Shown piece by piece: positions 5,432 through 63,351 of a DNA stretch of 64,000 nt. Source of the stretch: Octopus sinensis (taxonomy: Eukaryota); NCBI RefSeq assembly GCF_006345805.1, contig NW_021835988.1:248001-312000 (forward strand). Reading direction: 5' to 3'. Within the stretch, counting starts at the first letter, position 1, and the number at the start of each line of letters is the position of its first letter. The notes under the pieces were generated by a model, which was not told where the DNA came from, made no database searches, and saw only the letters and a program-made list of their open reading frames with translations. The position numbers and the translations under genes were made by a program.

Positions 5432-6391
5432 CGAGGCAAAAATCTCACGTATTAAGAATATCCTTGATGAAAACGACAGCGAGAATATTAACAATGATGA
5501 ACTCCCAATTATTCGCGATAAAGAAATTCAATTCATCCTATGATTTTCTCTTTAAAATTAAATGCATATATCATTATCGACCATGAATCAAAATTAAAGC
5601 TATTATCATATTTGACTTTGACAGAATGTGCAATTACAGATTGCACGACCTTGAATAGAGTGTGCAATTAACAGATTTTGAAAAACACTTTGATAGTTGA
5701 AACCACATTAGCACAATCATTAACACAATTTACCACCAATTGACAGCGCAATCAGAAGAATTTGCGTAAAAATATTAACTATTTAGTTAAGTTTTTCGTA
5801 AAGATAGAATTTATTTTCGGTATGCCTCTTTTCCTAAACTTTTTTATTATTCAAAAATAATTTTTTCAATAGATAACCGAAGGAGGGAAGACGACCTTAA
5901 GAAAAGAAGTTTTTCGTAAAGATAGAATTTATTTTCTGTATGCCTCTTTTTTCCTAATATTTTTTATTATTCAAAAATAATTTTTTAAATAGATAACCGA
6001 AGGAGGAAAAACGAAGCTGAAGAAAAAACGGTCAGCTTAAAGTAATTAATTAAATCTTTTTGTGTGTCGCTTTTTGGCTGCTGCTACTCTGCCTGCCGCA
6101 TTTCCGCTTGCCCCATCTCCGGCTGCCCCATTTCCGCCTGCCCCATTTCTGCCAGTGGTTTGTCTAATCAAGGTCACTAAGCTAAATCTCCGGACTATAA
6201 AGGCTTTTAAGCATTATCTTAATTGGCTGTTAAAAAAATTAGACAGGTTATTGCCGTGGCGGCAGAGATTTTTTTTGTTTATACTATTTTACAAATTTTT
6301 AAAGTTTTTTTTTTGTTTTTTTTATTTTGTTGTTTTTAAATTATTTATTTTTATTTGTTTTTTTATTTTTTTTGTTATTTTCTAAAAATTC

Positions 6392-6862
6392 AACCGGATT
6401 GAATTTTTAAACTCCTTAGATCCCTCTGGAATGCGGAATCATCTTTTAAAGTTAAAGATAGGCGTTCCAGTGGTTTTATTACGAAATCTTGCGCCACCTA
6501 AATTATGCAACGGAACGAGGTTAGTTATCAAAAATTTGATGGCTAACGTAATAGAGGCGACGATATTAACAGGTAAGTATAGAGGTGAGGATGTTTATAT
6601 TCCACGAATTCCGATAATTACTGATGAATTACCATTTAGATTTAAAAGGCTGCAATTTCCTTTGAGGATGAGTTTTGCAATGACAATAAACAAGGCCCAG
6701 GGACAGTCATTAAAGGTAGTTGGGTTATTTTTAGAGAGTGAGTGCTTTTCACATGGACAGCTGTATGTGGGATGCTCGAGGGTAGGCAGAAGAGAAAATT
6801 TATTCATATATGCCAAGGAAGGACGGACGACAAACATCGTTTATCAACAGGCGATAGAATAG
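6392..6862 (+). pseudogene. Helitron RepHel PIF1-family helicase C-terminal fragment
   Basis: [30 protein letters not shown]...LCNGTRL...[22 protein letters not shown]...[14 protein letters not shown] are PIF1 motifs IV-VI. The N-terminal helicase and Rep domains are absent. Confidence 0.9.
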
Positions 6863-7431: not shown

Positions 7432-8069
7432 CTTTTATTTTTACAAAATAACAATAACTCAGTTAAACACCACAAATTCTTTTAAAGTACTGTCTTTCTG
7501 TGTTAGATAATAAATTTGAAAGTGACTTTTTAAATTCTCGTATTTTTTTCTCCATTGCTCGTCTTATTTAATAAATAAATTCATTGGTCTCTTAGTTTGC
7601 TTTATTAAGATGTATTTCAGCTTTCCTGATGGTTTGGTTTGCGTGGAATGCCCACAAAAAAGGAACCACTAGAAATGTCTTAATTTGAATTAAACATTCT
7701 GATTTTTCACAGTTTGTGTTGAATAAAAGGATGCCTCAATGATTAGATTCACAATAATATGTTTGTAGCAGGGACAATTGCTCTTTTGTTTGAATTTGAT
7801 TTTAAAAAGTTTAAAACTTTAAAGTAGTGTCATCATTCTAATCAACAAAAAATATTTTAAATGAAAAAAGAATATTTTTATTTAAAATTTAAAAAAGGAC
7901 ATTTTTTTCCTTATATGTCCCGGGTACGAACCCATTTTTGAATTTTCATATTTTTTTTTAATCTGTCTCATAACACCAAGTAGTGGCACTATTCAACGTT
8001 TTTTTAGCCGGTAGCACAATACCACTGCTAGCACTGTGCCAACCGGCCATTATGGTTGCCTGAAAATGG

Positions 8070-8330
8070 TTGCTCTCAAAGTCCTCTTTCGTTCAAGACC
8101 GAATTTATACTCTTCCAGTTTTTCAAAAGTTTGGAAAAACAGTCGACTATCTGTCTGGGAGGGTGAATTTGACTCGAAATATGCAGTTGTCGGCGGGTTA
8201 TTTGCAAGATAAGAATATTTTTGCATACACGGGATCACTATGCGTCCATTGCAAAAAAGCAGACAGTGATTATGTCCGAAGACATAATAAAGTGGTAAAG
8301 TGTATCAAGAGTTGCTCCCAAAAGACCTTG
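8070..8330 (+). mobile_element. Degenerate fragment of the R2/NeSL-like RLE retrotransposon family
   Basis: LQDKNIF...LCVHCKK-ADSDYVRRHNKVVKCI aligns to LQDRNLF...LCNHCKK...SDYLRRHNEVVKCI of the 15751-17148 copy, with an internal deletion. Confidence 0.7.
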
Positions 8331-9240: not shown

Positions 9241-12200
9241 ATGACATGCAAACATTTCTTGCAAGAATTAATCCTCGATTTCTTCAGCGATGACCAAAGC
9301 ACGCATTTCAAGGCGGGGACACGTCTATAAGAACTATTAAAATACAAAGACTGCACCACCTCAGAATCCGACGTTGAATCAATTATTAATGGACTTTTTT
9401 CTATAATTACGACCAGCTTCAGCCACTGCGGATACAACCCAGGGGTTACCATTGCTATATGTATTCCTTTTTTCACGAATTAGTGATCATCGTCGAGTTT
9501 GACAGTGATTTAGTCTTAGCCATGCAGTTGGCTCTTTATTTGAGATTTCTTCTTACAAACCTTCCAAGACCCGACCTCAGACATTTGAGCGAGGGCTTTG
9601 CACTGGTGGCCAACAGAGTGAGTAGAGAGATTTCCACTGATTGGTTGGAATTGGACCTGAACATATTTTTTGAATATCTCCATTTTGGAAATTCTGTCAA
9701 ACGACTTGGAGCAGTTTTTTTGTTTGTTTATTTGAGGTTATGTGTCTTGGAGAACTCGCCAAATTCAAGATTTTTGACTTTAATCCTTACTTTGACTTTA
9801 TTTTTGAAATTCTTCTAAATGTCCTCGACGATGTTTGGCTTGTCTAACCATTTCAGGTCGGAATGAGAGAAGAAACCCTTTCGACCCTCACTCGCCTCAT
9901 TTCCCATTCTGTAACCACACCGGCTGCCTGTGAAATACCATTTAAAGTAATTTTTCGATTTATCAGAATTTGATAATTTTAATTTTTTGCGGTTTGAACA
10001 CCTCCAATCCAAATAAAAACTCAAAATGGTACAGTTCTCTACTCGGACTGAAAGCCCTGGTGACTGTGCTCTTGCCTTTTTTTGTTTGTGCTGACTTGGG
10101 GTCTTTAGGTCGACTTTAATGAGGTCAGTGAACGTGTTGAGAACCCTCGGACTCACGACTATTTTTTTCACATGGTTTTTGAGGTGTTTGTGAACATTCA
10201 GAAACACAAGTCTTCTGTGTTTGATGAGCAAGATGAGTTCTACCAGTTTTTCCAACAGGAAAAATATTTGAACGATTTTATGAGCAGACTGATCCCTCAT
10301 ATTTCACATATTTCACAGCCAGTCTTATTTACCAATTTTTCCACTTTTTGTCTGCTATTCCAATCATGACGGACAATCCCACTTCGCTTCTCAACGTTTG
10401 CTGTCCCGGGCCATGTTTAGAGCATTTTCCTAAAAATATCAACGGCTAAACTGAAAAGGCACACGTCATATGCAGTGATGATGTATTTACTTGTCGTCAG
10501 AATCGCCATGGTTCGGAGAATTGCCCATTTTTAGATGGTCCCTTCATCAGTCAGAGAACTAATGGACGCATTGAGTGTGACTGCATTATATCTGATGGAA
10601 CGTGCTGGAGAAGAACAGAAAATAGTAAAAAATGCTGTCTAATCTGTAAGATTTTGGTAAAATCCTTGAAATCAATGATTGTTTCGACGTGTTACATTCC
10701 CAAATCAATTCATTTAGAGTTTTGTACTAAAATGTTGGCCTTTCTGAGGACTGCAAACTCTAGTGTTTTGGAAATTGAGGTTTGTGTGTGTCATACATGG
10801 TAGATAACTCAACTACTGGGAATGGTCGGAATTATGTCTTTGGATAAAATGGAGTTTTATTGTGAACGAAAGAAATGTGAGGACTCTCCTTTATCGAACC
10901 TCAGACCCCCGGAAGCAGTGAAAGATGCAAAAATAAACTGTCAGTTCATATCATAGTCAAACCTAGACAATCAGCAGTGACTTGTTGGTGGATAGGAATT
11001 TCAAGCATTCTGAGGACTATTTCAACGCAGTGTGTATCAAGATGGTCATGACGTTGATCAACTCGGGCAAATATTGCCGTATAGAATTTGAGGCCATGAT
11101 CGATGTGTTGGTCGCCACTGCCAGTGAGATGGGACTCAAAGTAGTTAAGAATCTCCCAGAAATACTGCCCGTCCTCTTCAAAGTGATGGATTCCGCTGAT
11201 GACATCATCATTAGGGTGTAATTTTATTTGTTAGGTGTAGTTATGTATGAAATATTTGTCCTGTCTTCTGGATATTTGTAAATTGCACATGAGGTCGTAC
11301 ATTTCGTTGATCATGAAGATTCTTATGGTTGTGAGGTTATCTGATTTGTAGGAACAGTGCAGTGTTAATATGAGGAGGCTCATGGCAGTCTTGGTCGTGG
11401 CTGAGAGAGTGGCCTCAGTGATTACCCACGAGTTCAGGAAATATGGGGAAATTATACAAATAATCGTCAAAAAAGTGCTTCAGAATTACATTTTAATTCC
11501 TGGTGTTCTTCTTCAGGTTAGTGGCATATTGCACTGCAGACTATGAAATTCCTTCAAAAAGTGACGATTGATATTTCCCAAACGAGCACTGTCAACGATA
11601 TTTTCACGGTCCTGACCTTGAAAACATTTCCGAGGAGACAATTATGTTGGTCATCGGTAGTGAAAAATGGTGAGGGATTAAAGGCAATTGCCCTGATTTT
11701 GTACAAATCGGATTTCCTGGAGTATGGTGAGTGATTGGTCAGAGTGATGACTACAAAGTATTTCAGCAGCACATCCTCGGCTGTGGTGGATTCCTCGGTC
11801 TTGGTAGTAAGAATGATTGCTCACATCATGGGCCAACGCTTCCATTCGGTCTTTTCAAACCTTAAAAGGTTTTTGGTGGAAAAAAAGATTTCCTTCCATC
11901 AAATCACAGCCATTCAGAACGCATCCCGCGGAATTGTTAGGTTATGTAATTTATTATGTAACAAGGACCTTGAATTTATCTCATCTTTGATTAGAGGCTC
12001 TTCTACTTGTTGGGTGAGACCGATCACGAAATACGAAAATTCGGGATTGTTTTTGGTTATAGAATATTCTATTATGTTTAGTTGACTAAGCCAGATATTC
12101 TCCACAAATACAAGGATGTAGATAATTGGATGAATCGCCTTTCCAATGAAGCAATAATAACGTGCAATGTGTCAGCCATTAACCAGTGCTATCAACTGGC

Positions 12201-15200
12201 CATAAAAATATCCGGCAATTTCAAGGTTTTTACTTTATTCAAGAGGATTGCAGTGATTTGTTTTTTTGTGCGTTTGTATGTTTATTCCCTGATATAAACA
12301 GCGACGAGATGATTCAGGTTATGCAACTCTTTTCGACCGCATTTGAATTATCCAACAATACTCAAGTCAATCTCTACATTTTGAGTTTGGTGGAATATTT
12401 AGAAAAGTTTTTTGCGGTATCAGTGTTGAGGACTTATAGACAGACCAGAGTGCCCATAAATACTTGTCTTCTGCGCAAAGTAGCCTACAACTGTCAAGAC
12501 TTGACAAAGTCCCTTTATTACGCAGAATTGGAGTTCCACGAAGAGCACGAGGAGGGCACTTCAGAATCTCTTTGCAGTTTGTACAGCATTCTGGATGTGC
12601 CATCATCCGTGTGGGGAGTTGTGTCCGGAATGACCCAGCATTTGAATGATGCGAACAAGCTACATGGAGAGTGGCATGAGAAGATTGGAGATTGGGAGTC
12701 TGCTTTGTATGAATACAAAAAGAATAAATGTGTGAGTGATTGTCTTCGATGTTTTGCCAACCTTGGGCGATGGAAAGAATTAAAGGAGGAATTGTTGCCA
12801 TACCTTGACTCCATATCACTCGACGACAAAATGGCATGCTCACTTTCAGTATGGGAGACAGACAACAGGCCCTTGTTTTCTGACTGTTCTAAATTTATTT
12901 CTTCCCATTCGGCAGAAGGCTCATTGTACCACGCAGTGGATTCAATTGTGAGAGGTGACTACGACTCTTCTCTTTACGTAGTGTTGCTACCACATTTTAG
13001 TATCTTGATGTCCACGACAGGTTTCTAACAGATTCGCTAAAGTCTTCTTCTCTGGAGGATGTGTTCAATATTCATAAGGTGGCTGAATGATGTAGTATTT
13101 TAGACAAGTTTTGGAATACATTTGTCAACTGAGTTGAGAGAGGCAGTTGGGGTGTTGAGAAATGAGCTAAACAAGTCCTCGGTTTTGTCACTGTGGACAC
13201 AGAGACTGCGGGTTACTAATAAATGTTTCAGTGACAGCTTGTTAGTATAAATTGTGAGTCACTACGATTCCATCACAGAAATGACCCCGCGATTGGAATT
13301 CACTCACGAATGTCTTAATTCGTCCAAATTACTTTTGACTGAACGGTACCTCAGAAAGCTCTTTGGATCTGAGGGCACTTCAACAATTGTGTGTGACCCT
13401 GAGTTGAATTATTTCTATGCCGTTCACCTCTGTCAAAAAAACTCAAAGGTAAGCTCATTTCTTTTTCTTTCCAGACATTGGTTCACAAATATCTGCTCTC
13501 GTTTATTGAGAATAATAACTTTCCCCACACCCTGTCCTTTAATCATGCAAAAAGTCAAAAATTCGACAGTTTTGCCAAGTAGAGTGTGTGTGGCATATTT
13601 TAGACTTACAAATTATTTTGTGGTACTTCATGAAGAGATTAATGGAAATAATATTCTTACTTCGAAAAGACTTCTTTCTATTGTCCAGAACGTTGTGAAC
13701 GACCTTCATTTTAAACATATTTATTCTCTGGAGGTCTACGAGGTTGATTGGTGTGTTTTATCTTCAGTTGTGGCACAACTTTGCCCGACTGAACTACGAA
13801 ATTGTGAATTACTGTCACAATTTTGGTGTCTCTCCCCACTTGACAGATGATTCTGATTCGAACCAAGTTTTCTAGCATTGGGTGTACTTATATAAAGGAA
13901 AAGGAAGTTATAGATTGTTGCATCAATGCTTTGGAAGGATTCATGAAGACTATTGTGTTCTCTGAGACAAGCGGTTTGGCACTGCAGCACATTTTGAGGT
14001 GAGTTGGTGGTTCTGAGAGATTGCAGGTTCACGATGCTTTGGCTCCGATTTGCATCATTTCCCGTAATCCACAATTGCATGACTCGGGCTCTCCAAGTGA
14101 TCCACATTGACAATTGGCTGCTTGTCTTGCATCAACTGATTGCAATGATTGATAGTGACATTGTCCCAGTGAAGGAGACAATTCAGTATTTATTAAATTT
14201 GATTGGACTGGCACACCCTCAAGCATTGTTTTATCCTCTCCTTGTTTATTACAATTCTGGGAATAGTTCAAAAGTGAAGGCAGCTTCAGATATTCTCAGG
14301 TCAATCCATCTGAAAGATTCGAAAGTGAAGGATGACTTTATTATGGTTAATGTATTTGTTAGACAGTTGTAGGTCGTGGATGAACTAATTCGAGTTGGTC
14401 TGACTTGGGAAAAGTTGTGGTATGAAGGTTTGGACGAGGCATTTTCTCTACTCAGAAAAGGACATAAAAGGAATGTTTTCCATATTGAATGAGTTTTACG
14501 TCATGATTGAAAGGAAGCCTGTCACTTCTTGGGAAGTCGAGTTCACTAACCTATATTCCTCCCGCCTCACCGAAGCCCGTCGACTTCTCGAAATATACAA
14601 TTGCCTAAAAAGATTAAAGAATTGGAGTCTCTCCGGCTTCATTCTGTGTCCCCGAGGTTGTTTGAAGCCCGCAAACTCGCGGGGTGGTTCCCGGGACGTA
14701 TGTTCCTGGGGGAGAGTTGATTACCATTGACCGTTTTTATGATCAAGTCGTGATACTTCCAACCAAAAGGAAACCGAGGAGAATTTCCTTGATTGGTGAG
14801 TATGACTTGTGCATTGTAGGGTCTGATGGCAATAAATATGAGTTCTTGTTGAAAGGGCATGAGGATTTGCGACAGGACGAGCGTGTCTCCCAGTTCTTGT
14901 CGGTAGTCAACGAAATCCTTCGTCGTAGGGAAGATGGGAAGAGGAAAATAGAGTATTCGTTGTTCTAGAATTTAAGAATAACTAAGTTTGCTGTCATTCC
15001 CTTGTCATTCAATTCGGGACTTATCCAGATTGTTCCTCAAACCGACACTTTGCAGTCATTGATAAAAGAATATCGCCCGAAACAGAAAATACTGCCCAAC
15101 ATTGAGAATAAATTACTTGAAATGGTTATTTGGAATTATTAAGTAATAGTTTTCAAATAGTCGATTTGATAACTTTACGGCGTTGCAGAGAATGGAAATA

Positions 15201-15700
15201 TTTGAGAAGGCGATGGAGGCCACTAACGGATCTGACCTGGCCAACATTCTGTGGCTCAAGTCCAACAACTGCGATGTTGCTTCGAGTTTCCATTTTAGAC
15301 GTGGTTTTTTTGGGGGCAGAATTTTATCGAGTCGTTTGCCTTCATGTCGATTGTTGGCTATGTTCTCGGTCTCGGTGACAGGTCAGAGGAGTGCTGAGTA
15401 GTTCAGACACCCCCTCAATATAATGTTGAATAGAATGACTGGCAAGGTGGTCCACATTGACTTTGGGGATTGTTTTGAGGTGGCAATGATGCGAGAAAAG
15501 TTTCCCGAGTCAGTCCCCTTCCGTTTGACTCGAATGTGTGTCAAGGCTATGGATGTACGATTATATTCTGACAATTCCAGGCTGGGGGGGGGGGGTGAAG
15601 GGTTACTTTTATGAGAGATGTGTGTATATGATGCGTATTATGAGGGAGTCGAGGGAGACTTTGATGGCAGTCCTCGAATCGTTCATATACAATCCATTGA
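9241..15700 (+). pseudogene. TOR: TOR (PIKK) kinase, multi-intron, disrupted
   Basis: Collinear HEAT, FAT, FRB and kinase segments ([45 protein letters not shown]) separated by more than 20 introns of about 20-30 nt. Lesions: in-frame TAA at 9328 and 13248, TGA at 11732 (ambiguous), frameshift near 14445, frameshifting deletion near 14597, G12 tract at 15584-15595. No FATC domain found. Confidence 0.85.
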
Positions 15701-15750
15701 TTTCAAATCGATAGCAAGTTTCAAATCGATAGCAAGTTTCAAATCGATAG
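15701..15750 (+). repeat. 18-bp unit x2.8 at the TOR/retrotransposon junction
   Basis: TTTCAAATCGATAGCAAG at 15701 and 15719, with a partial copy at 15737. Confidence 0.9.
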
Positions 15751-17148
15751 TATTTTGGTGTACTTGAAGATAGTGGAAGCAACGTTCTTAAGAATAGAGT
15801 TATGGACTCTATCTTTGAGAATGTTAAGAAGAGGATAGCTATGCTATCGAAAACGAAACTTAACTCTGTGAATCTGTTTCGTGCTATAAATGAATATGCA
15901 TTGTCACTATATAATTATTATATTGGGCTAATCAATATTGAACCTTCTGAATTTGATGATATTGACAGACAAATACGGCAATTGCTTACGTCGCTCAGAT
16001 TACAACCTGCAAATAAAGAGAGACTGTATTTAAACCAGAAGGCTCTTGGAAGAGGGCTTTCATCAGTTACTTTCAAAAGTGAACTAATGCTCTTTCAGTT
16101 CCTTACGAGTCTGGAAAATATGTCAACTATATGCTTACGGAGGGCCGGGATTCTGCGTGTAATTAAAATAAATAAATGGCATTTGGCTATGATCGCAGGA
16201 TTTCTATCCTCTAAATATGCAATTGTTGATAAGAAGACTATTACTATTGAGTCTCTAAAGTCCAGTCCGATACAATATTTACAAAAGAAAATTAGTTCTA
16301 AAGCACTACATTCTGTGCTCTTCAAATTTATGGATGAACCTAATGTTGATTTACCTGCATCCTCAGACTGGCTATCTAATGGAAATAATGGGCCACGAAG
16401 CGAAGCATTGTATTGTCTTTTGCAAGATCGAAACTTGTTCTTTGCATCCGCTGACTCATTATGCAATCATTGTAAGAAAAGCAAGAAAACTGTTGACCAC
16501 ATGGCTACTCAGTGTGGTAAAATGCTCAACAGTGATTATCTCCGGAGACACAACGAAGTTGTGAAGTGTATTCACCTTAACTTGTGCCGAATGTATGGAC
16601 TCAAAAAAGCAAGACGATTGAAGGGACATTCTGTTCAGTCAACACTGTTGACGGGAAAAATTGAAATCATGGTTGATACAACAATCCTCACCGAAACAAA
16701 AGTAGAATACAACAAGCCAGATATCTTTGTTCACGACAAAGTCAGAAACGAAATAAATCTAATTGAAGTGGGTATTACTTCACAGGATCGCCTCAAGCAA
16801 GTGGAGGTTGAAAAGTGTCACAAGTATGATCTACTGGCAAGCGAGCTTTTGCTTCTGTATAGCTGTCAAGTAAAAATAATTCCTGTGGTTATGACATGGG
16901 ATGGAGTTGCCTCGAAATGCTTCAAAAATTATATGAAGAAACTATCTATTGAAGCAGGAACGAGGACATACATCCAATCCGTTGTACTGAAAAGAACGCT
17001 CGAGAGTATGATGATCGAACACAAGCACGGAATGAAGGTATCTGCTTCCAACCGGTATGAGGAGATGGTATGCAAAAATGAAGACTACCACCCAATGAAT
17101 GCTAAAGAAGATGCAATGGTTAAATCAGATGTGGTAAATGGGGAGTAA
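15751..17148 (+). mobile_element. 5'-truncated R2/NeSL-like non-LTR retrotransposon (RT thumb, CCHC finger, restriction-like endonuclease)
   Basis: Open frame from YFGVLED through KLNSVNLFRAINEYA, CNHCKKSKKTVDHMATQC, RRHNEVV and the PD-(D/E)xK motif KPDIFVHD...LIEVGIT...EKCHKYD. Confidence 0.9.
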
Positions 17149-19266: not shown

Positions 19267-19337
19267 TGCGCCTGCCGGGAATCGAACCCGGGTCGCTCGC
19301 ATGGCAAGCGAACATGATACCTCTACACCACAGGCGC
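19267..19337 (-). tRNA. tRNA-Gly (anticodon GCC)
   Basis: Reverse complement GCGCCTGTGGTGTAGAGGTATCATGTTCGCTTGCCATGCGAGCGACCCGGGTTCGATTCCCGGCAGGCGCA. Perfect 7-bp acceptor stem, GCC anticodon loop, TTCGATT T-loop, and a T5 Pol III terminator immediately downstream. Confidence 0.95.
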
Positions 19338-19676
19338 TGCTTCATAAACCGTAGTTGTTTGGCATTTTACGATCTGGATTATTTTAAATCATGCTCAGGT
19401 TTCCAAACTTTAAAGGATTATTCAATTTTAGTTTTGATGCAGTGGTTAAAAAATATTTTTGCAAAAATCAAGAATTTGAAAAAAGTCTTTATAAAATGTT
19501 TTTCTATTATTTAAATAATACTACTTTTTACAACTCTTGTAAATATTTAAATTTCACTTCGTCTTATTTACTACAAATATAACAATTTTAATTTATAGAC
19601 TATCATGGCGATCATAAAATTCTTTACATTTTTTTATTCGAATTATTTAATAAATTATACGTTCAATCTCATAAAA

Positions 19677-20397
19677 CCCCACTCGGGCGATTGGCTTGAC
19701 GCTTTGCCGATTTTCTCTGCTGGAATGTTGCTGGACGACGAATCTGTCCGCATCGGAATCTGTTTACGGCTTGGCATAGAGATTTGCCAGCCGCACCATT
19801 GCAGATGTGGACAACTCATTGACAGGAGAAGTTTACACCCTCTCTCTTGTCGCCTCAGTGCCGGCAGGATCCCCAGGCACGCCTCATTGAATGACGTTGT
19901 GAAGCGCGCGCTTAACGCCGCTGGATTCCCCTCGATGTTGGAACCGATAGGACTAGACCGTGGAGATGGAAAACGCCCTGACGGGTCGACCTTATTCCCG
20001 TTCAGGAAGGGAATGGCACTCGTGTGGGATGTTACCTGCGTGGACTCATTTTCTCCTTCATCGTTGGTCGACTCCGCTTCTCGTCCTGGATCTGCATCTG
20101 GCCTTGCCGAATCTAGGAAAACTGCTAAATATGCCTCTTTGACCGATACCTGCTGCTTCATTCCCCTGGCTTTCGAGACCAGTGGGATAATTGGACCCAA
20201 AGCCCTCAAACTCCCCTCAAAGATTGGTTCAATCATCTCGAGGAGGAGTCACGACAGTCGTGAAACGAGCTGGCTTTTTCAGCGGATATCGTTCGCGATA
20301 TTACGTGGAAATTGCCTGTCCATCCGCTCGGCGACTCATCTAGATTAGTTAACTTCTCTTCTCTAATTTTCTTGTTTCTTATTAAAAAAAAAAAAAA
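19677..20397 (+). mobile_element. 5'-truncated CRE-like RLE retrotransposon with poly(A) and ~12-bp TSD
   Basis: PHSGDWLDALP...CRCG...RHASLNDVVKR...DGKRPDG...WDVTC...FQRISFAILRGN, followed by poly(A). AATCTCATAAAA occurs at 19665-19676 and 20398-20409. Confidence 0.9.
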
Positions 20398-20699
20398 AAT
20401 CTCATAAAATGTAAAAAAGCATTTCATTTCGGAAAGTTATTGAAATCATTTGTAGACGAGAAAGATTCTTGAAGAACAAACTATAATAAATTGTTGAAGC
20501 AAAATAAATAAAAAAAAGAAATGATTTGGCCTTTTTTGAACATAAACTGAAATTTAGTTTCCACTTAAAATTGAAACAATCAGCTTTTATTGCTAAAGTC
20601 AAAGTTTTTTTGAAAAAGAAAACTCACAAAAGAAATGAGTTGGGCAACGCAAAACGGTGAGAATGATAAAATATTGTATTGTGAAATTAAAACCAGAAG

Positions 20700-21220
20700 G
20701 TTGGGAAAACTGGAGGCCGTACTGCTGATCTTTTTCTAGACAACGAAAAGATCTCATTCACAAAGAACACTAAAATTCTGGAAGTCACTTTTGACACCAA
20801 CATGTTTTTAACTGCCCATTTAGAAAAGTCCATCAGATCCAGTCAGAAAAAGATTGGACTAATCAAATCGATATTTGGCGGACTAAAGAAACCGTTTCCG
20901 GCTCTTGGCACTCTCTAAAAACAATTCATCGTACCAACAATTGGCTATGCCTTAGCCGCATGGGGTATTAATTTGTCATGGTCTAACCGCCTTAAAATTG
21001 AGACTACACTATGCCGAGCCGCCGCGGCTAGCATAACGAAAATTTCCAATTTGAACAACATTATTCCAAGTTCCCTTGGCCACCTAATTAAGAAAGATGG
21101 AAATGGCTTCTTAGTTATCCAGAAGGACCACACGTCAAAAGACCAAGACCTTAGCAACCAGAAGCACATCACCCCGATTCAATTTCTCACAAAAACTGCT
21201 CCCCACCCGACAAATTGAAT
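20700..21220 (+). mobile_element. Degenerate LINE fragment (post-RT region, Jockey/I-like)
   Basis: KILEVTFDTNM...HLEK...KKIGLIKSIFG...KQFIVPTIGYALAAW resembles the LINE RT thumb (LGV.FD..L.F..H....Y...I.P...Y...W). Confidence 0.6.
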
Positions 21221-22069
21221 AATGCAGATGACATTTGAAGTTTGTAATTGACTAATTGAATTATGCAGATTTCATTTGAAGTTTATAATTAACAAATTGA
21301 TTTGAAAATGGTATAGATGACCATCTAGCATCACTCCTTCATCCTCTGTTTCCAGATCATTTAGGGTTTTTTTCTTCATTTTCAATATTTTCTTTACAAG
21401 AATGGCTTGCTTTATTATAAGGCTACCGAATGAATTAATCTCTTCAATGATTTAAATCATATACTTGTGCCAGATTATAATAGTAGGTATTGTTTTCTTT
21501 AACACGAGTGTCTGTATGAAAGTCCAAGTTCCTTCTTCAATAGACAATTTTTCAAAGAAAGCGCGGCAAAAAAATCATGGAAAGCTTCCATATTTTGACT
21601 AGATTAATAATTCTCTTTTAAAATAATATTAAATGTCATCGCCTGACCCGCCATTTGCCAGACCACATTTCCAATTTCATAAATTTCCCCAAAAACCACA
21701 TTTTTTTAAATCCGAAGTTATTCAATGAAAATATACAATTTTGTTAAAATTACAGCTAATCAATCACTTCAAAGAAAACTAGCCATAAAAAAATACTCTA
21801 ATTATTTTGGTGTTGTGGATTATTCTCAGTTCACTGGCAGGAAGTTTTACTTATGGAGCTTTTCCACCTTAACTTGCTTCAGGTCTTTTTGAGAGGTGAT
21901 CCCAATTTAAGCATGATTTGTTTCTCATTTTATTGAGTACAATGTTGTTCTGACTTTTGTATCCTTTTATTAATTTTGTTTTCGAAAATAAAAAATATAT
22001 TTTTTATAAAATTATTTAAATTGTAATTGACTTTCTGTAGCTACTAATGTGCATGTTTAGCTGATAAAA

Positions 22070-24001
22070 ATGGATTTAATTGAAGGAGCAAAATTTTACA
22101 TAGATTTAATGCTTGAAGATGCCGGTCCCGGAATGAAGGCAATGCTATTTGATGCCAATACAGTAACAATATAAAACATAATTAAATTAGGCAAAAATAG
22201 TAAGCTACATATATTCTCCAACGGAACTATTATACAAAAAAGTATTTTTATTCGACCAATTAAAAAACCAAACTTGCGAGTCTCTATCTTTCGTAGTGGC
22301 CATAATTTTTGTGCAGCCGACTAATTCTAATTATAATTTGATTCTCAAAGAACTGTCAACCCCCCGATTTACACATTATGCAATATGTCCCCAATATTAA
22401 AATATTTTAGATTTCTCAAGTTACTGTCCAACTGACTTTATCGAAGGGATTGCCATGGCAGATAACGACGAGAGAATCCTGGCCCTCAGAGTATTCTTAT
22501 CTGGGTTACTCCCTTAAGGAAATTTGCTTAGACTACTATGCCCATGGTCCCTGTCTCTTTACATTCAACATTGAGACATGTCATATGGTTGTAATTTTAT
22601 TAATATTTAATAATAGAATAATGGAGGTTGGAAAGGAGATTCATTTGAGCTTGTTTGTGGGGGATTAATGTCAGTGATCAATTCGTTGGGGCAAAACCCC
22701 GAGATCCGTCATCAAGGCTCGTCCCCTTATTGTGCCAAAATATGCTATGAGCTAAAAAATATTTTGGACATGCAGAACGAATCTTCTAAGGACTATGATT
22801 CGCTGCTAGTCATAGTAGATCGGAATATAGACCCAGTGATCCCTGTCATCAATTCGGTCTCTTTAACCGAGTTCACTAGCATAGTGGACTTATGAGGCTA
22901 TGATACACGAATTGGTAGGAATACACGACAATACGGTAAAATTGACACCGAAAGGCTCAAAGCAGATTGTAATAACATTAAATTCAGCGAATACATTTTT
23001 TAAACAGGTTTTGTGGACGTTATTGAACCACGTGTATAGAATCGGTTACTTTTTTACGATGAAATTGTGTCCAACGTGTCCAGTTGTATAGAAAAGATCA
23101 AAGGATTTAGCCAAGGCTTAACGGGGACTGAGTCATTGTCATATATGAAGGTTTTTTGGTTCAGCATGTTCAGGGATTTGTGGAAAAGTACACCAAACAG
23201 AGGAAGTGGGTGGAAATGGTGACACAACACTCCGACCTTGTAGGCGAACTAACCAGAATAGCCACAGAAAACAGTCTGTTCGAGACTTCGCTTCTGGAAC
23301 AGGACATTATTGCATCAAAATTAGATTTCTCTCAAGTTATGCAAGTATTTTGAGTTTTTTACAATTTTTATTGCAGAAAGTTGGAAATTTGTTTGCCGAT
23401 TGTCCGAATGTGACTGCCTTGGACACAATTCGACTGTCGTTGTTGTGTTTGATCAGATTTCCTGAGGCTGCCAACTACAAACTCGACATATTCAACAAAC
23501 ATTTACTCAAGTTGAACGTCTCTCCTCAAATGTATCAAATTCCGCAGTCATTTCAACGTTTTTTGAGCAAAAAGTCGAGTAATCGGGCTGATGGGACTAT
23601 TTTGCGGTGGAGGGAGGCTTTGAAGAAAGCCTCCAAGTCCAATCAAAGTGACCCTGTCAATTTGTACCGACGCTACCGACCATATTTGGCTACCCTGCTT
23701 TCCGAGATTGCCGAAAACAGTCTATCACTAACTGACTTTCCAAGCTCTTTGCAATATAACCCGTTTTTTGGAAAGGATGTGAAGAAGGGAGCCCAAACTA
23801 AAGGGGGTTACTCAAAAGTTGTCGTATTTATTGTTGGAGGAGTCACCTATGCTGAGGCTGGAGTCCTGGAATCAGAAAATTGGCCTTTTCAGGTTATTTT
23901 GGGCGGAACTCGAATTCACAATTTTGACACGTGAGTTGAGGGGTGTTATTTTATTTAGTTATTCCAAGGAGATAGTCAACATTCTTAGTTCGTCTGGATG
24001 A
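22070..24001 (+). CDS. VPS45: Vacuolar protein sorting 45 (Sec1/Munc18 family)
   Basis: Nine GT-AG introns of about 23-32 nt give an uninterrupted frame: MDLIEGAKFYIDLMLEDAGPGMKAMLFD...DRNIDPVIPVINSWTYEAMIHELVGI...VVVFIVGGVTYAEA...VILGGTRIHN. Confidence 0.9.
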
Positions 24002-24135: not shown

Positions 24136-25239
24136 TTAAACAAATTTTGAATTATAAATTCCTCTGAGGTCACTTAGAATATTTTCAAGTTGATTAAAAA
24201 ACTCACATGACCCCTCATTTGATGAATAGCAGGCAGCCTTGTACGTGTTTGAAATTTGACTGCTAATGAATGTGATCATATCCTCAATCATGTTGAAGAC
24301 ATTTTTAAAGTCAAGGCTTTCATTGTGAAAGGCCAAAACCGATTTCATATTGCACATCATTGAATTAAAATTTGCAAATTGTGCGATAATTTTTTTATGT
24401 CCTTGTTTTATTGATTTTTTCTTTTGTTTTGTGAGTTTTTTGATTTCCGTGTCCATATTTTTTAGGATTTGTGAGATCAAGACGTCATTTTTAGCGAAGG
24501 ACCTTTTTCTTCTCACAACGAACTCTTGACTGAGATTAGAAGACAGTAGCGGAATCTCCTGCATTTTTTCAATATTTTTTTCAAGTGCCGTGTACTGTTT
24601 TTTAAACTCAATTCGTATTTTATCAATAATTCTTTCTTCATTTTCCCCAAATAGAGCGAGATCTTCGGTTATTTGAACAGTCTCAAGCAGATTTTGAAGG
24701 TCGGTTGTTATCTTTTTGAAGCATTCTGTGTTTTTGATGTTAATTTTGAACAATTGTGAAGTTTCCGAACCCCATTTCTTCATGGTCAGCATACTTGAAG
24801 TTTTTGTTAACATTTTTCTAGTTTCAGTAAGTTTTTTCTCGATGGAAGATAAATATTTTTTATTTTTTTGTGCGCTTAATGAAGCTTCTGGAATGATTTT
24901 GATAATATTTTCAAGGGATCGAATTATTTTGTCGACAATTTTTGAAAATTCAAATAAAAAATCATTTACTTCTGGTCGTTCGTCGAAATATTTAGCAAGT
25001 CCAGTATTTATTATCAAAATTATTTTTATGAAATCATCCATCGCACTCCGAATATTTAGTTTTGTCTCTTTTGGAATCAAAGTTTGATTAGGGGCCGTTT
25101 CCTCGACCAATGTGTCGTATACGGTGTTGCACATGTCGTACAGTCCGTCATATATTCCGTCGTAGATTGGCTCGTTCTCTCCGTCTTCGAACATATTTAT
25201 TCTCAGCATTTTTAATTTCTTTTCTAATTCTTCATCCAT
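24136..25239 (-). CDS. Intronless 367-aa orphan, predicted helical/coiled-coil protein
   Basis: A 1104-bp open frame in AT-rich DNA is unlikely by chance. The sequence is K/E/I/L-rich with heptad-like character. No recognised domain. Confidence 0.65.
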   Translation of the reverse strand: MDEELEKKLKMLRINMFEDGENEPIYDGIYDGLYDMCNTVYDTLVEETAPNQTLIPKETKLNIRSAMDDFIKIILIINTGLAKYFDERPEVNDFLFEFSKIVDKIIRSLENIIKIIPEASLSAQKNKKYLSSIEKKLTETRKMLTKTSSMLTMKKWGSETSQLFKINIKNTECFKKITTDLQNLLETVQITEDLALFGENEERIIDKIRIEFKKQYTALEKNIEKMQEIPLLSSNLSQEFVVRRKRSFAKNDVLISQILKNMDTEIKKLTKQKKKSIKQGHKKIIAQFANFNSMMCNMKSVLAFHNESLDFKNVFNMIEDMITFISSQISNTYKAACYSSNEGSCEFFNQLENILSDLRGIYNSKFV

Positions 25240-31150: not shown

Positions 31151-31199
31151 AAAAAAGAATCTCATTTTTCTGATCAAAGTTGAGATAAAATCTGTCCAA

Positions 31200-31340
31200 A
31201 GACTCTTTCAGGTGGAGAACAAAAAGCTCAGAAAATATGATCTCCTATCTAAAGAGTTGGAGCTGATAGATCAAGCAAAAATGAAGATTATACTTAAGTG
31301 GGATTCACCTGTAACTTCAAAGTTTATGAAGTACAAAAGA
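31200..31340 (+). mobile_element. Small R2/NeSL-like RLE C-terminal relic
   Basis: QVENKKLRKYDLLSKEL...KMKII..WD aligns to QVEVEKCHKYDLLASEL...VKIIPVVMTWD of the 15751 element. Confidence 0.6.
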
Positions 31341-32146
31341 TCATTATATAGGAATGACAGATTTTTGCATATATTTAGTCGTTGACTATAAAAAAACTAG
31401 AATGTATGATTGACTTTTGTTGATACAAAATTGAGTCATGGAAAAGGAATAGAGTCGGATAGTAGATTTATTTGTTCATATAATTTTATTTAAACAGTAA
31501 ACAATGATTTTATTTTCTATGTTTGAATGTACGAATTGTATAAGAACCATGGAAAAGAACCGAAATGTGAGTTCTATCCTTTTGAATAAACGAAGAAAAT
31601 TTTGTGATCTGTGCAGCTTATAGACTTAAAGGCCACTTCTAATATTATAATTTCTTCAATTTAAAAGAGTTTGTAAAAAATAATTAAAATCAAATACGGT
31701 TATTGCGAGGAATTGGATTATATGATTCCATAATACCAACGATTATTTTATAATCAATATTAATTTTGATCAACAATATTTCTAATCTTGACAGATTATA
31801 AAATACATTTTGACATTATTTATTGATAAAAATATGTAATGAATACTAATGTAGGCTTTCTATGAAGCAAAATTGAAGATTATTCCCGTAGTCTTGACAT
31901 GGGATAGATATTTCACAGTTCTTTAAAAGCCATATGGATAAGTTATCTATTAAGAAGGAACGAGGACATAAATCAAGTCGGTTGTGCGAAATAGGACGCT
32001 GGACGAAAAGTACGCCTCTACTGCCAATCAACTTGCGGAGCTGAACAAAAAACCTATATGAATACTAACATCAGCAGCAATGAATTTGAATTTCTACGGA
32101 GTGGTCAGTCCTCTATGAAACGAGAAGCAATCACAACCCGATAAGG

Positions 32147-33338: not shown

Positions 33339-34274
33339 ATGGTATGTCTCTATTTATTATTAGGAGCGTTAGCTTTTCAAACACTCGGTAATTTTAAATT
33401 CAATGTGAAATCTATCCATAGGCTATCCATGGAAATTGAAAATTTTTTTTGATAACATCCCTGTTTGCTTTTAATTAATAACTATAGAGAAAGGATGTTT
33501 TAACGACAAAACAAGTGATAATTTTTAGCTATATAATAGGCTCTTTCTGATGTAATTGAAATAACGGAAGTTGATAGGTCAAATAAATTAAATCACTTGG
33601 TTATCAAAATAGAGTTAGTTTTATTATTTTTATTCTTTCAAAGTAAAGACAACAAAATTATGGATAAAATATACACTGAGGATGAGAGTAAAGTAATATA
33701 CGTAAAATACTACAATCAAAATGTATTTAAAATTAAATTTATATAGAAAAATCATGGAGCAATTCTATATAATATATTAAACTTTTTTGGTTTGCCTGAT
33801 TCAAACAATACAAATAGTATTATGAATAATACTTTGTGGTAATTCTATATCATTTTTATTTAAGTAATCGACTATTGTCAAAAAAAGAGTTAAATTATCT
33901 TCGAAATATGAACCATCTTATAAATGACAGTAATCAAAAATTTATTTTTTCAGCAACTTTATCACTTCTTTTGAAAAGTAGAATAACACCAACAGAAAAG
34001 CCAACAACAGTGTCCTTGAAAAGTAGAATAACACCAACAGAAAACCCATTAGACAGCACACGTCCTACTTCAAAATGTATATATTTATTATTATTTTGCA
34101 AATCGTGTTATTCCTGTTAAAAATAATTTAAATTTGAAACCAATAAATGTGAAAAAATTTGAAATGCTTTATCTCATACCCATTTTCGTTGCACTTCTGA
34201 TTATTTCGGTTATTGCCGTCATTATAGTAAGAAAAAAGAGAAAATCGGAAAAATATGATAATTTAGAAGAGTAA
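33339..34274 (+). CDS. Type-I single-pass membrane protein, paralog A (signal peptide, ectodomain, T/P/S-rich stalk, TM, short tail)
   Basis: Starts MVCLYLLLGALAFQTLG. Seven GT-AG introns of about 24-34 nt keep the frame. The TM exon MLYLIPIFVALLIISVIAVIIVRKKRKSEKYDNLEE* is joined only by a GT...AA intron at 34077-34101. Confidence 0.65.
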
Positions 34275-35083: not shown

Positions 35084-37157
35084 CAGCGGTTCCCAACCGG
35101 GGGTGCCAGCAAAAATTTAGGGGGTGGAGATTTTTAAAATTTATAGTTAATTTTTTAAAGAGCAAATATTTTTCAAATCTGAAATCTATTATTTTTAGAT
35201 TATACCTTTTTAGATTGGAAATTAAATTTATGTAATTTTATTTATTCGAAAAAATATATTATTATATCAAAGTTTTTTTTTGTTTCAAATTGTCACGTTT
35301 ATTCTTTGTTGTTATGAAAAAGAGAAAGTAAAATGATGATTATGTCCGTTTTTGATTTACATATACTAAAATCGATGATTTCCAAAGGCCCAAATGTTTC
35401 TTATGTGAAGCTATATTCTCTAACCAGAATATGAAACCTTCCAAACTGGAACAGAACTTTCTAAATAAACATGGTGGAACTAATAGTAGCGGCAATGATT
35501 TAAAATCTCTAAAAATCAAGAGAACTCGATATGATTTGCAAGTGACTCTTCCTAACTTAGGATTTGTATATCTTGATAAACCTATTTTGCTTGCTTATTA
35601 TAAAGTGGCCAATAACATCGCAAAGTCTAAAAATCCACATACAGTCGGAGAAGATTTGATTAAAACATGTCATTGGAAATGGTCTCATTAATACTCGGAA
35701 CAGAGTCAAGACAAAAGATTGAATCATTCTCGCTATCCAATAATATAATTCACAGTCGAATATGTGTGTTAAGAAATGATATTTTGTCCCTAATTATTAC
35801 AGAGATCAAATCAAGTCCTTTGTTTATATCTCTTCAGTTGGACGAATCAACTGATGTCTCTAGTTACCATTGTTAAAGATTTTTTAATGAAACATGATTT
35901 GGATACCCAGACAATAGGGTCTATTTGTACAGACGGTGCTCCAGCAATGCTGAGAAATATGTCCGGTTTTGCTGGGCTATTAAAGAATGAAATCCCGAAC
36001 ATAAGGACTACGCATTGTTTTCTTCACCGCTATGTATTAGCTGTTAAAACTCTCCCCCCATTGTTGAAAAATGTACTTGCCACCACTTTAAAAATTATTA
36101 ACTGGATAAGAGGTCGTGGTATGAACCATCGAATTTTTAAAACAATTTGCAGTGATCTTGGCAACAATCATTTTATTTTATTATTTCATACCGAAATTCG
36201 CTGGCTCTCACGAGGTCAAGTTTTAACCCGCATCTTTGAGTTAAGAGAAGTAAAATTATTTCTTCATAAATATAATCATGATTTATTGCAATATTTGGAA
36301 TCCCACGAATTTATCCAGATGCTGGTTTATTTTACATTTTTACTCACATGAATAATTTGAGTTTATCTCTTCAAGGTACAGATGTTAGCACACTCAAATG
36401 GCACGAAAAAATGGCTGCATTCAAAAATAAATTATCTTTTTGGCGTCGGCGAATAGAAACATACAATGTCACAAATTTCCCAACCTTAGAAAAGGTGGTC
36501 GACAATTCAATGAATCCTACTTTTCGTAAAGAAATTATATCTCGTTTAGAAGTATTGTCCACGTCTTTTGTAGGATATTTCGGAACGGATCTAAATATTA
36601 CGGATGAATGGATTTTGAGTCCATTTTCGTATAATCTGAAAATTATGTCAGATGATCATGAACTCAAAGAAGGTCTAATTGATCTTCGAACAAAACAAAG
36701 CACTTATAATAGAGTTTCACAATTGTACATTGGAGCAGTTTTGGAGTTCAGTAGTGAAAATGTATCCAAAATTATCACAAAAGGCTTTGTATGAAATTAT
36801 TCCATTTGCAACGACATACTTATGCGTGTCAGGATTCAGCTCTCTTTTGGTAATTAAAACTAAATACAGAAATCGCCTGAATCCTGAACATGACATTCGT
36901 ATTGCGATTAGCAAAAAAATGCCAAGATTTGACAAAATCATTGAAAATAAACAAAAACAAAGAAACCATTAATTATTTACTTTTGTTCTTGTGTGACTGT
37001 ATACTTTTGTTAATTTAAACTTTATTGTGTTTAATGTTAAATTTTTAATTTTTTCGATTAACAAACTTCTGGTTAAATAATAACATGTTCTGGGGGTGCG
37101 CGAGTTTGTACAAAAATATTTAGGGGTGCTAGCTCTAAAAATGGTTGGGAAGCTCTG
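35084..37157 (+). mobile_element. hAT (Buster/Charlie, ZBED8-like) transposon with fragmented transposase
   Basis: TIRs CAGCGGTTCCCAACC / GGTTGGGAAGCTCTG and TSD TTGTAAAT/TTGTAATT (7 of 8 match). Motifs MKPSKL, SLQLDESTDVS, CTDGAPAM, HCFLHR, HTEIRWLSRG and PFATTYLCVSGFS are spread over several frames. Confidence 0.9.
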
Positions 37158-38015: not shown

Positions 38016-39301
38016 GCCTGGGCATCACCCAGCTTGATGACCTTATCATTCTGGGTTCCCCAATCAATAGCAAGGCTACTAAGAAGGCTTTATGTAACAG
38101 GCTCGAAGAATTGGAAACTCCAATCTCCCGCATTTCCAAACTTGAATCCCATTTGGGCCTTTTCTTGCTCAAGAACTATCTCTTTATACCGAAGCTAACT
38201 TATCTCATGCGCTCATCGCCCTGCTTTCTCGAACAAAATCACTTGTCTCGTCTCGACAACATGGTCTCCAAAGCTCTTGAGCTTCTCGTAAATATCAAAT
38301 TCAAACCTTCAGACATGCGACGGGTTAATTTATTTATTCGCTACGGGGGCATCGGCATTCGTTCTTGTGTTGATTTATCCCTCCCATGTTACCTTTCCTC
38401 GTTGTCTGCTTCTGCTAGTTCCTTCAACTCTGTTCTTTTCCCCTCCCCTGAACAGCCCGAGTTGTTGGAATATACGGCGGGTGTCAACATGTGGATTTCT
38501 CGTGGGCTTAAAATCCCGGACGTCCCCTCAGTTCAAAAGAAATGGGATGATATACATTGTTCCCATGTACTTGAAGATATCCGCCTACGTGCTGACCAGT
38601 TTCAGTTGGCAAGCATTAATTGTGCCTGTCAACCCCACTCGGCCGATTGGCTTGACGCTTTGCCGATTTCCTCTGCTGGAATGTTGCTGGACGACGAATC
38701 TGTCCGCATCGGAATCTGTTTACGGCTTGGCATAGAGATTTGCCAGCCACACCAGTGCAGATGCGGAAAGGACATTGACAGGAGAGGGCTACACCCCCTC
38801 TCTTGTCGCCGGCCGTATACCCAGACATGCCGCCTTGAATGATATTGTCAAGCGCGCGCTCTACGCCGCTGGATTCCCTTCGGTCCTGGAGCCGGTTGGG
38901 TTAGACCGTGGCGACGGAAAACTTCCCGATGGGTCCACGCTTTTCCCGTTCAAGGGGGGACTCGCTCTCGTTTGGGACGTCACCTGTGTCGACTCGTTTT
39001 CCTTGTCATCTCTCATGGACTCTGCCTCCCGCCCTGGCTCAGCCTCCGCACATGCCGAAACAAAAAAAATCACAAAGTATGCCTCATTGGAGAACACCTG
39101 CCTTTTCGTCCCTCTGGCTTTCGAGACGAGCGGGATAATCGGCCCAAAAGCTCTGGAGTTCCTTTCGGAAATCGGCTTGATGATCTCAAGGAAGAGTCAC
39201 GAGAGACGTGAGTCTAGCTGGCTTTTTCAGCGCATTTCGCTCGCGATATTGCGCGGAAACTGCCTGTCTATTCGCTCGTCCTTTCAATCCAAGAATTAAC
39301 G
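38016..39301 (+). mobile_element. 5'-truncated CRE-like RLE retrotransposon (longest copy, one frameshift near 38810)
   Basis: ORFs 38000-38842 and 38775-39299: IILGSPI...PKLTYLMRSSPC...GGIGIRS...WLDALP...CRCG...RHAALNDIVKR...WDVTC...FQRISLAILRGN. Confidence 0.9.
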
Positions 39302-40008: not shown

Positions 40009-41037
40009 ATGGTATGTCTCTATTTATTATTAGGAGCGTTAGCTTTTCAAACACTCGGTAATTTAAATTTAATGTGAAATCTATCTATAGGCTATCCATG
40101 GAAATTGAAAATTTTTTTCGAAGACATTCCTGTTTGCTTTATAATTAATAACTATAGAGAAACGATGTTTTAACGACAAAACAAGTGATAATTTTTAGCT
40201 ATATAATAGGCTCTCTCTGATGTAATTGAAATAATCGAAGTTGATAGGAAGTCAAATGAATTAAATCACTTGGTTATCAAAATAGAGTTCGTGTTATTAC
40301 TTTTAATCTTTCAAAGTAAAGACAACAAAATTATGGATAAAATATACACTGAGGATGAGAGTAAAGTAATATACGTAAAATACTACAATCAAAATGTATT
40401 TAAAATTAAATTTATATAGAAAAATCATGGAGCAATTCTATATAATATATTAAACTTTTTTGGTTTGCCTGATTCAAACAATACAAATAGTATTATGAAT
40501 AATACTTTGTGGTAATTCTAAATCATTCTTATTTAAGTAATCGAATATTGTTAGAAAAAGAGTTAAATTATCTTCGAAATATGAACCATCTTATAAATGA
40601 CAGTAATCAAAAATTTATTTTTTCAGCAACTTTATCACTTCTTTTGAAAAGTAGAATAACACCAACAGAAAAGCCAACAACAGTGTCCTTGAAAAGTAGA
40701 ATAACACCAACAGAAAAGCCAACAACAGTGTCCTTGAAAAGTAGAATAACACCAACAGAAAAGCTATCAACAGTGTCCCTTAAAAGTCGAATAACACCAA
40801 CAGAAAAGCCATTAGACAGCACACGTCCTACTTCAAAATGTATATATTTATTATTATTTTGCAAATCGTGTTATTCCTGTTAAAAATAACTTAAATTTGA
40901 AACCAATAAATGTGAAAAAATTTGAAATGCTGTATCTCATACCTATTTTCGCTGCACTTCTGATTATTTTGCTTATTGCCGTCATTATAGTAAGAAAAAA
41001 GAGAAAATCGGTTAAATGGAATAATTTAGAGGAGTAA
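40009..41037 (+). CDS. Type-I single-pass membrane protein, paralog B
   Basis: Same exon structure as 33339-34274. Three full plus one partial 15-aa stalk repeats. TM exon MLYLIPIFAALLIILLIAVIIVRKKRKSVKWNNLEE*. The last intron, 40840-40864, is GT...AA. Confidence 0.65.
40644..40811 (+). repeat. 45-bp coding VNTR (LKSRITPTEKPTTVS) x3.7
   Basis: TTGAAAAGTAGAATAACACCAACAGAAAAG starts at 40644, 40689, 40734 and (variant) 40779. Only about 1.7 units in paralog A. Confidence 0.9.
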
Positions 41038-63064: not shown

Positions 63065-63351
63065 GTCGACTCTGCCTCCCGCCCTAGCTCAGCCTCAGCA
63101 CATGCCGAAACGAAAAAAATCGCAAAGTACGCCTCATTATAGAACACCTGCCTTTTTGTCCCCCTCGCTTTTGAGACGAGTGGGATAATCAGCCCAAAAG
63201 CCCTGGAGTCACTTTCGGAAATTGGTTTAATGATCTCAAGGAAGAGTCACGAGAGACGTGAGTCTAGCTGGCTTTTTCAGCACATTTCCCTTGCGATATT
63301 CCGCGGAAACTGCCTGTCTATTTGCTCGTTCTCTCAATCCAAGAATTAACG
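63065..63351 (+). mobile_element. Short 3' fragment of CRE-like retrotransposon (same subfamily as 38016)
   Basis: High nucleotide similarity to about 39020-39301, including the terminal CAATCCAAGAATTAACG. Confidence 0.88.

Follow-up and report, generated by a model that had tools for sequence, protein, structure and literature searches.

An intron-bearing TOR kinase pseudogene that ends at a repeated element in DNA with tiny introns

The TOR locus and its 3' end

The window analyzed here is a 64-kb stretch of DNA (contig NW_021835988.1 of assembly GCF_006345805.1, positions 248,001 to 312,000). On its forward strand, at 9241-15711, lies a sequence related to TOR, the central growth and nutrient-sensing kinase, which to our knowledge all animals studied carry as one essential copy. 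A first-pass annotation made from the letters alone had described a full-length TOR gene in decay. The decay was borne out, as TOR homology is collinear over 9241-15711 and is broken by lesions of the reading frame. The locus is a real, unprocessed (intron-bearing) TOR pseudogene, which is an ordinary kind of object. The features at the locus and at its borders are listed below (nt, nucleotides; ORF, open reading frame).

9241-15711, forward strand: TOR pseudogene; ATG at 9241, TOR homology ending at 15702-15711, 22 or more GT-AG introns (20-28 nt) anchored by homology
12112-14345, forward strand: FAT domain region, readable via canonical introns except for the TAA at 13248; its conceptual translation matches Pfam FAT (3.7e-11) and HEAT_ATR
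14373-14681, forward strand: FRB remnant spread over three frames, covering FRB_dom profile positions 1-82 of 99
14684-15711, forward strand: PI3/PI4-kinase catalytic remnant (PI3_PI4_kinase, E=2.3e-63), aligning to human mTOR up to approximately residue 2428 of 2549
15701-15750, forward strand: perfect 18-nt tandem repeat, TTTCAAATCGATAGCAAG x 2.8, at the end of TOR homology; it provides a stop codon
15751-17148, forward strand: repeated-element ORF of 448 amino acids, in the place of the TOR 3' end
8068-8306, forward strand: degenerate fragment of the 15751-17148 repeat family, approximately 0.9 kb upstream of the TOR start codon

Raw reading-frame segments of 9241-15711 match the Pfam families FRB_dom, PI3_PI4_kinase and HEAT_ATR, and human mTOR is the best match of the locus among the solved structures in the Protein Data Bank (PDB). 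Full-length TORs searched by tblastn and a hidden Markov model (HMM) built from 12 TORs give matches that are collinear along the window. Spliced alignments were made with a protein-guided aligner of our own code, which permits tiny introns, frameshifts and stops. The guides were full-length TORs of the mussel Sinanodonta woodiana (KAL3862460.1), Trichuris muris, amoebozoans and parabasalids, and the four reference TORs of the lesion alignment were those of the mussel, Trichuris, Cavenderia and Pelomyxa. The FAT region is collinear with the TOR references in these alignments. In the kinase part, the alignment to mTOR 2109-2428 covers 320 residues, and no catalytic motif is damaged: LLKGHEDLRQDERV with the ATP-binding lysine, GLGDRHPLN and HIDFGDCFE. 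Matches in the HEAT region are weak; they comprise 9241-9946 at the N-terminus, which aligns to approximately residues 6-215 of Trichuris and mussel TOR, and 10904-11444, which is matched by the TOR HMM. The term full-length is only approximate. The HEAT region has approximately 800 residues versus approximately 1250 in the mussel (some 300-450 below the usual length) and the last approximately 120 residues of the protein are missing.

The locus has kept its introns. The 22 anchored GT-AG introns (20-28 nt) resemble those of the neighboring genes, and because they are retained, the copy is not a retrocopy. Since such tiny GT-AG introns are present, many apparent stops and insertions in TOR are not lesions. 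The intron GTGAGTATGACTTGTGCATTGTAG at 14796-14819, for example, appears as an eight-residue "insertion" relative to mTOR.

At the 3' end all four alignments stop at 15711, and TOR homology ends at 15702-15711 (approximately mTOR 2428 of 2549), with loss of the last approximately 120 residues including FATC. Pfam FATC has no match in the conceptual translation of the locus. The C-terminal 130 residues of eight TORs gave no credible tblastn match on either strand of the whole 64 kb at E values up to 100. Since FATC-like sequence is found nowhere in the 64 kb, the 3' end has been lost and not simply moved away by an insertion. The element that follows, at 15751-17148, recurs at least four times elsewhere in the window (41473-41904, 31155-32004, 21461-21933 on the reverse strand, and 8068-8306). 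Its 448-residue ORF has no match in Pfam or the PDB. It contains a CCHC-like motif followed by "KPD...D...E", a combination that resembles the zinc finger and restriction-like endonuclease at the C-terminus of R2-type retrotransposons without long terminal repeats (non-LTR). The earlier claim that FATC had been replaced by a retrotransposon thus holds as far as FATC is absent and a repeated element follows, and the putative retrotransposon identity of that element is one of motif resemblance only.

Lesions in the TOR reading frame

A lesion was considered firm where conserved, frame-defined blocks abut without room for an intron, or where no GT lies between them. The first four lesions below were assessed in this way and, together with the truncation at 15702-15711, make up the firm set; the remaining four are softer.

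14442-14445, forward strand: +1 frameshift, an extra T in a T4 run; "EGLDEAF" in frame 2 passes directly into "LYSEKDIKGMF" in frame 0, with no intron room
14596-14600, forward strand: deletion breakpoint and frame change; "TEARRLLEI" (frame 0) gives way to "LPKKIKELESLRLHSVSPRLF" (frame 2), with no GT between the flanks
14682-14683, forward strand: -1 frameshift in a G run (G4); "..EARKLA" (frame 2) runs into "VVPGTYVPGG" (frame 1)
15584-15595, forward strand: G12 homopolymer after a canonical 26-nt intron (15555-15580), one base out of frame
9328-9330, forward strand: in-frame TAA in an N-terminal helix, between ..KAGTRL and ELLKYK.., in a segment aligned to TOR residues ~6-60
11732-11734, forward strand: in-frame TGA before "LVRVM", which is aligned to "LVRVL" of mussel TOR
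13248-13250, forward strand: in-frame TAA inside a contiguous FAT block, between ..SDSLLV and IVSHYDSITEM..
14948-14968, forward strand: AT-AG intron of 21 nt, the only non-GT donor among 53 introns

The lesions at 14445, ~14597 and 14682 were recovered at near-identical positions with all four guide TORs and can also be read directly in the sequence. No intron bridges any of them, and the frame remains interrupted after splicing. The frameshift that had been noticed near 14445 is one extra T, on which all four references agree; they place it at 14445-14448. The -1 frameshift at 14682-14683 was absent from the earlier list of lesions. All three frame changes fall within 240 nt of one domain.

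The deletion near 14597 removes the end of the FRB domain and changes the frame, as had been described, although relative to human mTOR it spans 21 codons and not about 25. The aligned mTOR blocks end at residue 2087 and resume at 2109, so that residues 2088-2108 (YMKSGNVKDLTQAWDLYYHVF) are gone. No intron accounts for this gap, because there is no GT between the flanking blocks. The deleted residues form the last FRB helix (alpha-4) and include W2101, Y2105 and F2108. The locus thus has no complete four-helix FRB: nothing corresponds to mTOR 2088-2108, and what remains of the domain is distributed among three frames.

The run at 15584-15595 is indeed G12 where G7 had been predicted. A run of G13, G10 or G7 would keep the frame, and with G7 the spacing is that of the references. 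Of all the lesions, only this one could plausibly be a homopolymer miscount. This lesion was recovered with three of the four guides. The mussel guide uses instead a 46-nt splice (15555-15600), which is the sole splice that skips the run and scores far below every real intron.

The three stop codons are present and in frame, as had been reported, but they are weaker evidence because each could be skipped by a cryptic splice. The TAA at 9328 could be skipped only via a 27-nt GT..AG (9323-9349), which would delete the "EL..Y" motif too. The TGA at 11732 lies within a possible 18-nt GT..AG at 11727-11744, and the earlier suggestion that an 18-nt intron could remove it was correct. Around the TAA at 13248 there is a possible 18-nt GT..AG (13241-13258) that scores like a real intron. 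A length of 18 nt is one base below the shortest of 52 confirmed introns, and each of these splices (27, 18 and 18 nt; all multiples of three) removes residues aligned to conserved TOR sequence. The intron model used for scoring, which combines composition and splice-site weights, separates real from decoy introns weakly (means of 2.3 vs -3.7, standard deviation ~3-4).

The donor lesion proposed at 14948-14968 stands in part. The intron does begin with AT, and its removal joins GKRK to NLRITKFAVIPLS in a precise match to the references; an alternative cryptic GT-AG intron at 14953-14976 is likewise in frame. A GC donor proposed at 12215-12243 proved unnecessary and was dropped as a lesion, as a canonical 20-nt GT-AG intron at 12226-12245 joins both exons in frame. 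The same intron and that at 13867-13897 resolve the frameshifts called by the aligner at ~12205 and ~13864. Other frameshift calls in the FAT region depended on the guide and were treated as alignment noise at ~24% identity. An alternative genetic code was also rejected: in-frame TAA and TGA codons are confined to TOR, the neighboring genes have no internal stops, and NOG1 and Vps45 end at normal stops.

Judged from its sequence, this locus in its assembled form cannot code for a TOR kinase that works. The three frameshifts scramble the junction of FRB and the kinase N-lobe, the helix that contacts rapamycin is lost, and the protein lacks its C-terminal ~120 residues, FATC included.

Neighboring genes, source lineage and other features

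Three genes of the window served as controls for the quality of the sequence.

22070-24001, forward strand: Vps45, undamaged; 559 amino acids, nine GT-AG introns of 23-32 nt, full-length Sec1 match
46218-48454, reverse strand: NOG1/GTPBP4, undamaged; 617 amino acids, 13 GT-AG introns, all four NOG1 Pfam domains
50708-52075: serine carboxypeptidase, modeled over this interval only; joins via canonical introns, no lesion

NOG1 runs from its ATG to a natural stop with no frameshift or internal stop, and aligns end to end with animal NOG1 proteins at 55-58% identity. The guides for the three genes served as scaffolds only, and the models were verified by the window sequence, Pfam and database searches. 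Frameshifts called by the aligner in Vps45 (23820) and the carboxypeptidase (51575) are artefacts of distant guides, since the frames read straight or join by canonical introns. All 30 introns of NOG1, Vps45 and the modeled carboxypeptidase are GT-AG. Their mean GC content is 0.27, compared with 0.35 for the 22 anchored TOR introns. Intron 6 of NOG1 (47589-47673, reverse strand) is 85 nt long and extremely AT-rich, and it is the only one longer than 32 nt among the 52 confirmed introns.

The first-pass annotation had held that these neighbors are free of lesions and argue against general sequencing error. We found none in them (in the carboxypeptidase, over 50708-52075), and with 30 GT-AG introns in clean neighbors general sequencing error is unlikely. 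Nine lesions in the 6.5 kb of TOR lead to an expectation of ~5.8 in the 4.2 kb of NOG1 and Vps45, where zero were seen (Poisson P ~0.003). Using only the four small indels, P is ~0.08.

The genome, with its introns of 20-30 bases, is probably that of a dicyemid parasite. Introns this short have been reported in animals only from dicyemids and myxobolid myxozoans (PMC13644364). The window is rich in repeated-element and apparent transposon ORFs and has 30-41% GC over most of its length. Repeats make up 49% of the Dicyema japonicum genome, which has many copies of long interspersed nuclear elements (LINEs) and 36.7% GC (PMC6736024); in the myxozoan Thelohanellus kitauei, LINEs account for 0.07% of the genome (PMC4986447). 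The repeat content and GC of the window fit the former and not the latter, and thus favor a dicyemid over a myxozoan. The best matches of NOG1 are vertebrates, arthropods and spiralians, with no cnidarian among the named matches, which also points to a dicyemid.

Several other elements were observed. A tRNA-Gly(GCC) gene (19267-19337, reverse strand; Rfam 61.8 bits, also found by ARAGORN) lies among the repeats that separate the TOR remnant from Vps45. Upstream of Vps45 is a 41-nt tandem repeat (21209-21300, 2.2 copies, 86% match), and directly downstream, on the opposite strand, is an intronless ORF of 367 amino acids (24136-25239, reverse strand). Two near-identical ORFs for a Pif1-type helicase C-terminus, at 6386-6859 (forward strand; Pfam Pif1_2B_dom, 7.6e-17) and 53830-54339 (reverse strand), look like fragments of a Helitron-like element with at least two recent copies. 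Open frames of 103, 186 and 741 amino acids at 59658-62586 (forward strand) look like an endonuclease and reverse-transcriptase ORF, possibly of an intact non-LTR retrotransposon. A related 3' part that ends in an A16 run is found at 19599-20399, with more copies at 38631-39278 and 63161-63328. By eye only, C-terminal sequence like that of hAT transposases (..PFATSYLCE.GFS..) was seen in the forward-strand ORFs 35356-36969 and 43173-43844. The forward-strand ORFs 33830-34117 and 40503-40880 share their ends and carry approximately two and four copies of the peptide unit KSRITPTEKPTTVSL; they probably represent a further repeated element that has a tandem array inside it.

Age and origin of the dead copy

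The TOR remnant is strikingly diverged. Its identity to other TORs is 24% in FAT and 53% in the kinase, compared with 52% and 75% among the mussel, nematode and amoebozoan proteins. At kinase positions invariant in seven references it alters 14 of 85, where ordinary TORs alter 1-8 of ~100-107 in a leave-one-out comparison. NOG1 of the window is only mildly accelerated (57% vs 66-74%). This difference suggests that TOR in this lineage was fast-evolving long before the copy died. In an exhaustive profile search of protein collections, the FAT segment found TOR-type proteins only, the best at 51 bits with 25-31% identity, and no close relative. In the same kind of collections NOG1 had no match above 60% over its full length, and one of 71% over a fragment. 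A chimeric TOR query of 1036 amino acids gave no match at E<=1e-10, in a search that may favor proteins of similar length, as two other protein searches listed only matches up to ~1.7 times the query length.

The copy appears to have died recently. Its catalytic motifs are undamaged, and its GC content at each codon position resembles that of Vps45; both argue for recent decay. The few indels and at most two to three nonsense changes in ~5 kb of well-conserved coding sequence suggest roughly 1% neutral divergence since inactivation. We infer from this, as a rough guide, that the copy is young.

The explanation that we favor, with some reserve, is a dead, 3'-truncated DNA-level duplicate of a working TOR, in preference to loss of TOR from the organism. 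A working gene would have been duplicated at the DNA level and truncated at its 3' end, ending at the repeat junction. The copy would have been dead on arrival, without the last ~120 residues and FATC. A limited set of neutral changes would then have followed: three small indels and the 21-codon deletion in the FRB region, slippage of the poly-G run, a changed splice donor and at most three nonsense codons. This history is favored since duplicates arise frequently, have short lives and in many cases terminate at repeats. Pseudogenes born of duplication are far more numerous than unitary ones and are usually seen early in their decay. A duplicate is supported, too, by the repeated element in the 3' flank and by a further fragment of the same element upstream. 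An old divergent TOR paralogue, now dead, is also compatible with the data.

Several points weigh against a truncated duplicate. We infer a working parent copy elsewhere in the genome, and none was seen; animals normally keep TOR single-copy. The unusual divergence of TOR would fit a constraint already relaxed in the lineage, which also suits loss. The lesion count is softer than nine, as cryptic splicing in frame could bypass each of the three stops and the AT donor, and the G12 run could be explained by a homopolymer miscount. A unitary pseudogene, in which the organism's only TOR locus decays in place and the parasite has lost TOR signaling, seems to us unlikely. It would suit the native-looking start in an AT-rich upstream region like those of the neighbors, and a divergence far above that of NOG1 in a protein with a HEAT region 300-450 residues short, which suggests long-standing relaxed constraint. 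However, the few lesions and intact catalytic motifs imply very recent inactivation, and to catch the loss of an ancient essential gene in so narrow a time window is unlikely a priori. TOR is unmentioned in the accessible published analyses of dicyemid genomes, and we know of no animal that lacks it. In favor of loss, there are reduced parasites, namely Encephalitozoon, Plasmodium, Cryptosporidium and Theileria, in which TOR complexes are absent (PMC3236823), and the gene set of Dicyema japonicum is small, with only 5,012 members and thinned-out pathways (PMC6736024). Documented loss of TOR is limited to intracellular protists and microsporidia (PMC3236823). None of Raptor, Rictor, LST8 and Rheb is found within the 64-kb window. 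That we see the sole TOR locus of a dicyemid-like parasite, an animal dispensing with TOR signaling and caught in the act, we consider unlikely.

It is quite improbable that the gene is functional and that its lesions stem from false indels, from a contig collapsed or wrongly joined at the 15.7-kb repeat, and from tiny introns that went unrecognized and remove the stops. Three of the four small indels do lie in homopolymer runs (T4, G4 and G12), repeats are classic places for mis-joins, and every in-frame stop is inside a GT..AG of 3n length, that at 13241-13258 scoring like a real intron. If any GT-AG intron of 18-34 nt is allowed, a stop-free path exists through the whole gene. Along this path, however, conserved blocks are translated in the wrong frame, VVPGTY is lost and GYVLGLGD is garbled, so that no real protein results. 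Because such a reference-free minimum-lesion path neither proves nor disproves lesions, we adopted homology-anchored junction tests. The 21-codon deletion, the nonsense substitutions, the G-to-A change in the donor and the repeat junction are atypical as sequencing errors, whatever the platform. No frameshift was seen in NOG1 and Vps45 (4.2 kb) or in the modeled carboxypeptidase, all rich in A/T runs, and the clustering of three frame changes in one domain likewise speaks against error. The idea that a truncated TOR-derived protein or a regulatory transcript is still made, for example HEAT-FAT up to the first stop with a new kinase-independent role, is the least probable. An unbroken chain of exons with canonical introns can be traced over 11735-13247 and codon composition is still gene-like, but leftover open frames are expected in any young pseudogene. 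The TAA at 9328, 29 codons in, would end translation unless spliced out.

A decayed TOR copy at this locus has a practical consequence for annotation. Gene finders that allow introns of 18-30 nt can thread a false ORF here, which would place a bogus "TOR" in the pathway inventories of reduced parasites. If instead no intact copy existed, this would be the first animal without TOR, in parallel to microsporidia and apicomplexans (PMC3236823), and the constant nutrient supply of a host could make the TOR pathway dispensable in animals.

The locus can be compared with three known systems. With canonical animal TOR (Sinanodonta woodiana KAL3862460.1; human mTOR, PDB 5h64) it shares the collinear order of HEAT, FAT, FRB and PI3K-like kinase, and the catalytic motifs (the lysine in LLKGHEDLRQDERV, DRHPxN and DFG). 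It differs in its broken frame, in the absence of FRB helix alpha-4 and of the last ~120 residues with FATC, in a HEAT region several hundred residues shorter, and in identities (FAT 24%, kinase 53%) far below the usual. TOR-less lineages such as Encephalitozoon cuniculi, Plasmodium, Cryptosporidium and Theileria (PMC3236823) resemble it in a reduced parasite genome and a TOR locus that is non-functional. In those lineages, however, no TOR remnant is left at all and partner subunits are lost, whereas here a recognizable, recently inactivated gene is found, and in an animal. With the unprocessed duplicated pseudogenes, including segmental duplicates that are 3'-truncated and bounded by repeats, the locus has in common its introns, frameshifts, nonsense codons, repeat end and transposon-rich interval; it is unlike them in that the parent copy that defines the class is not observed for this locus.

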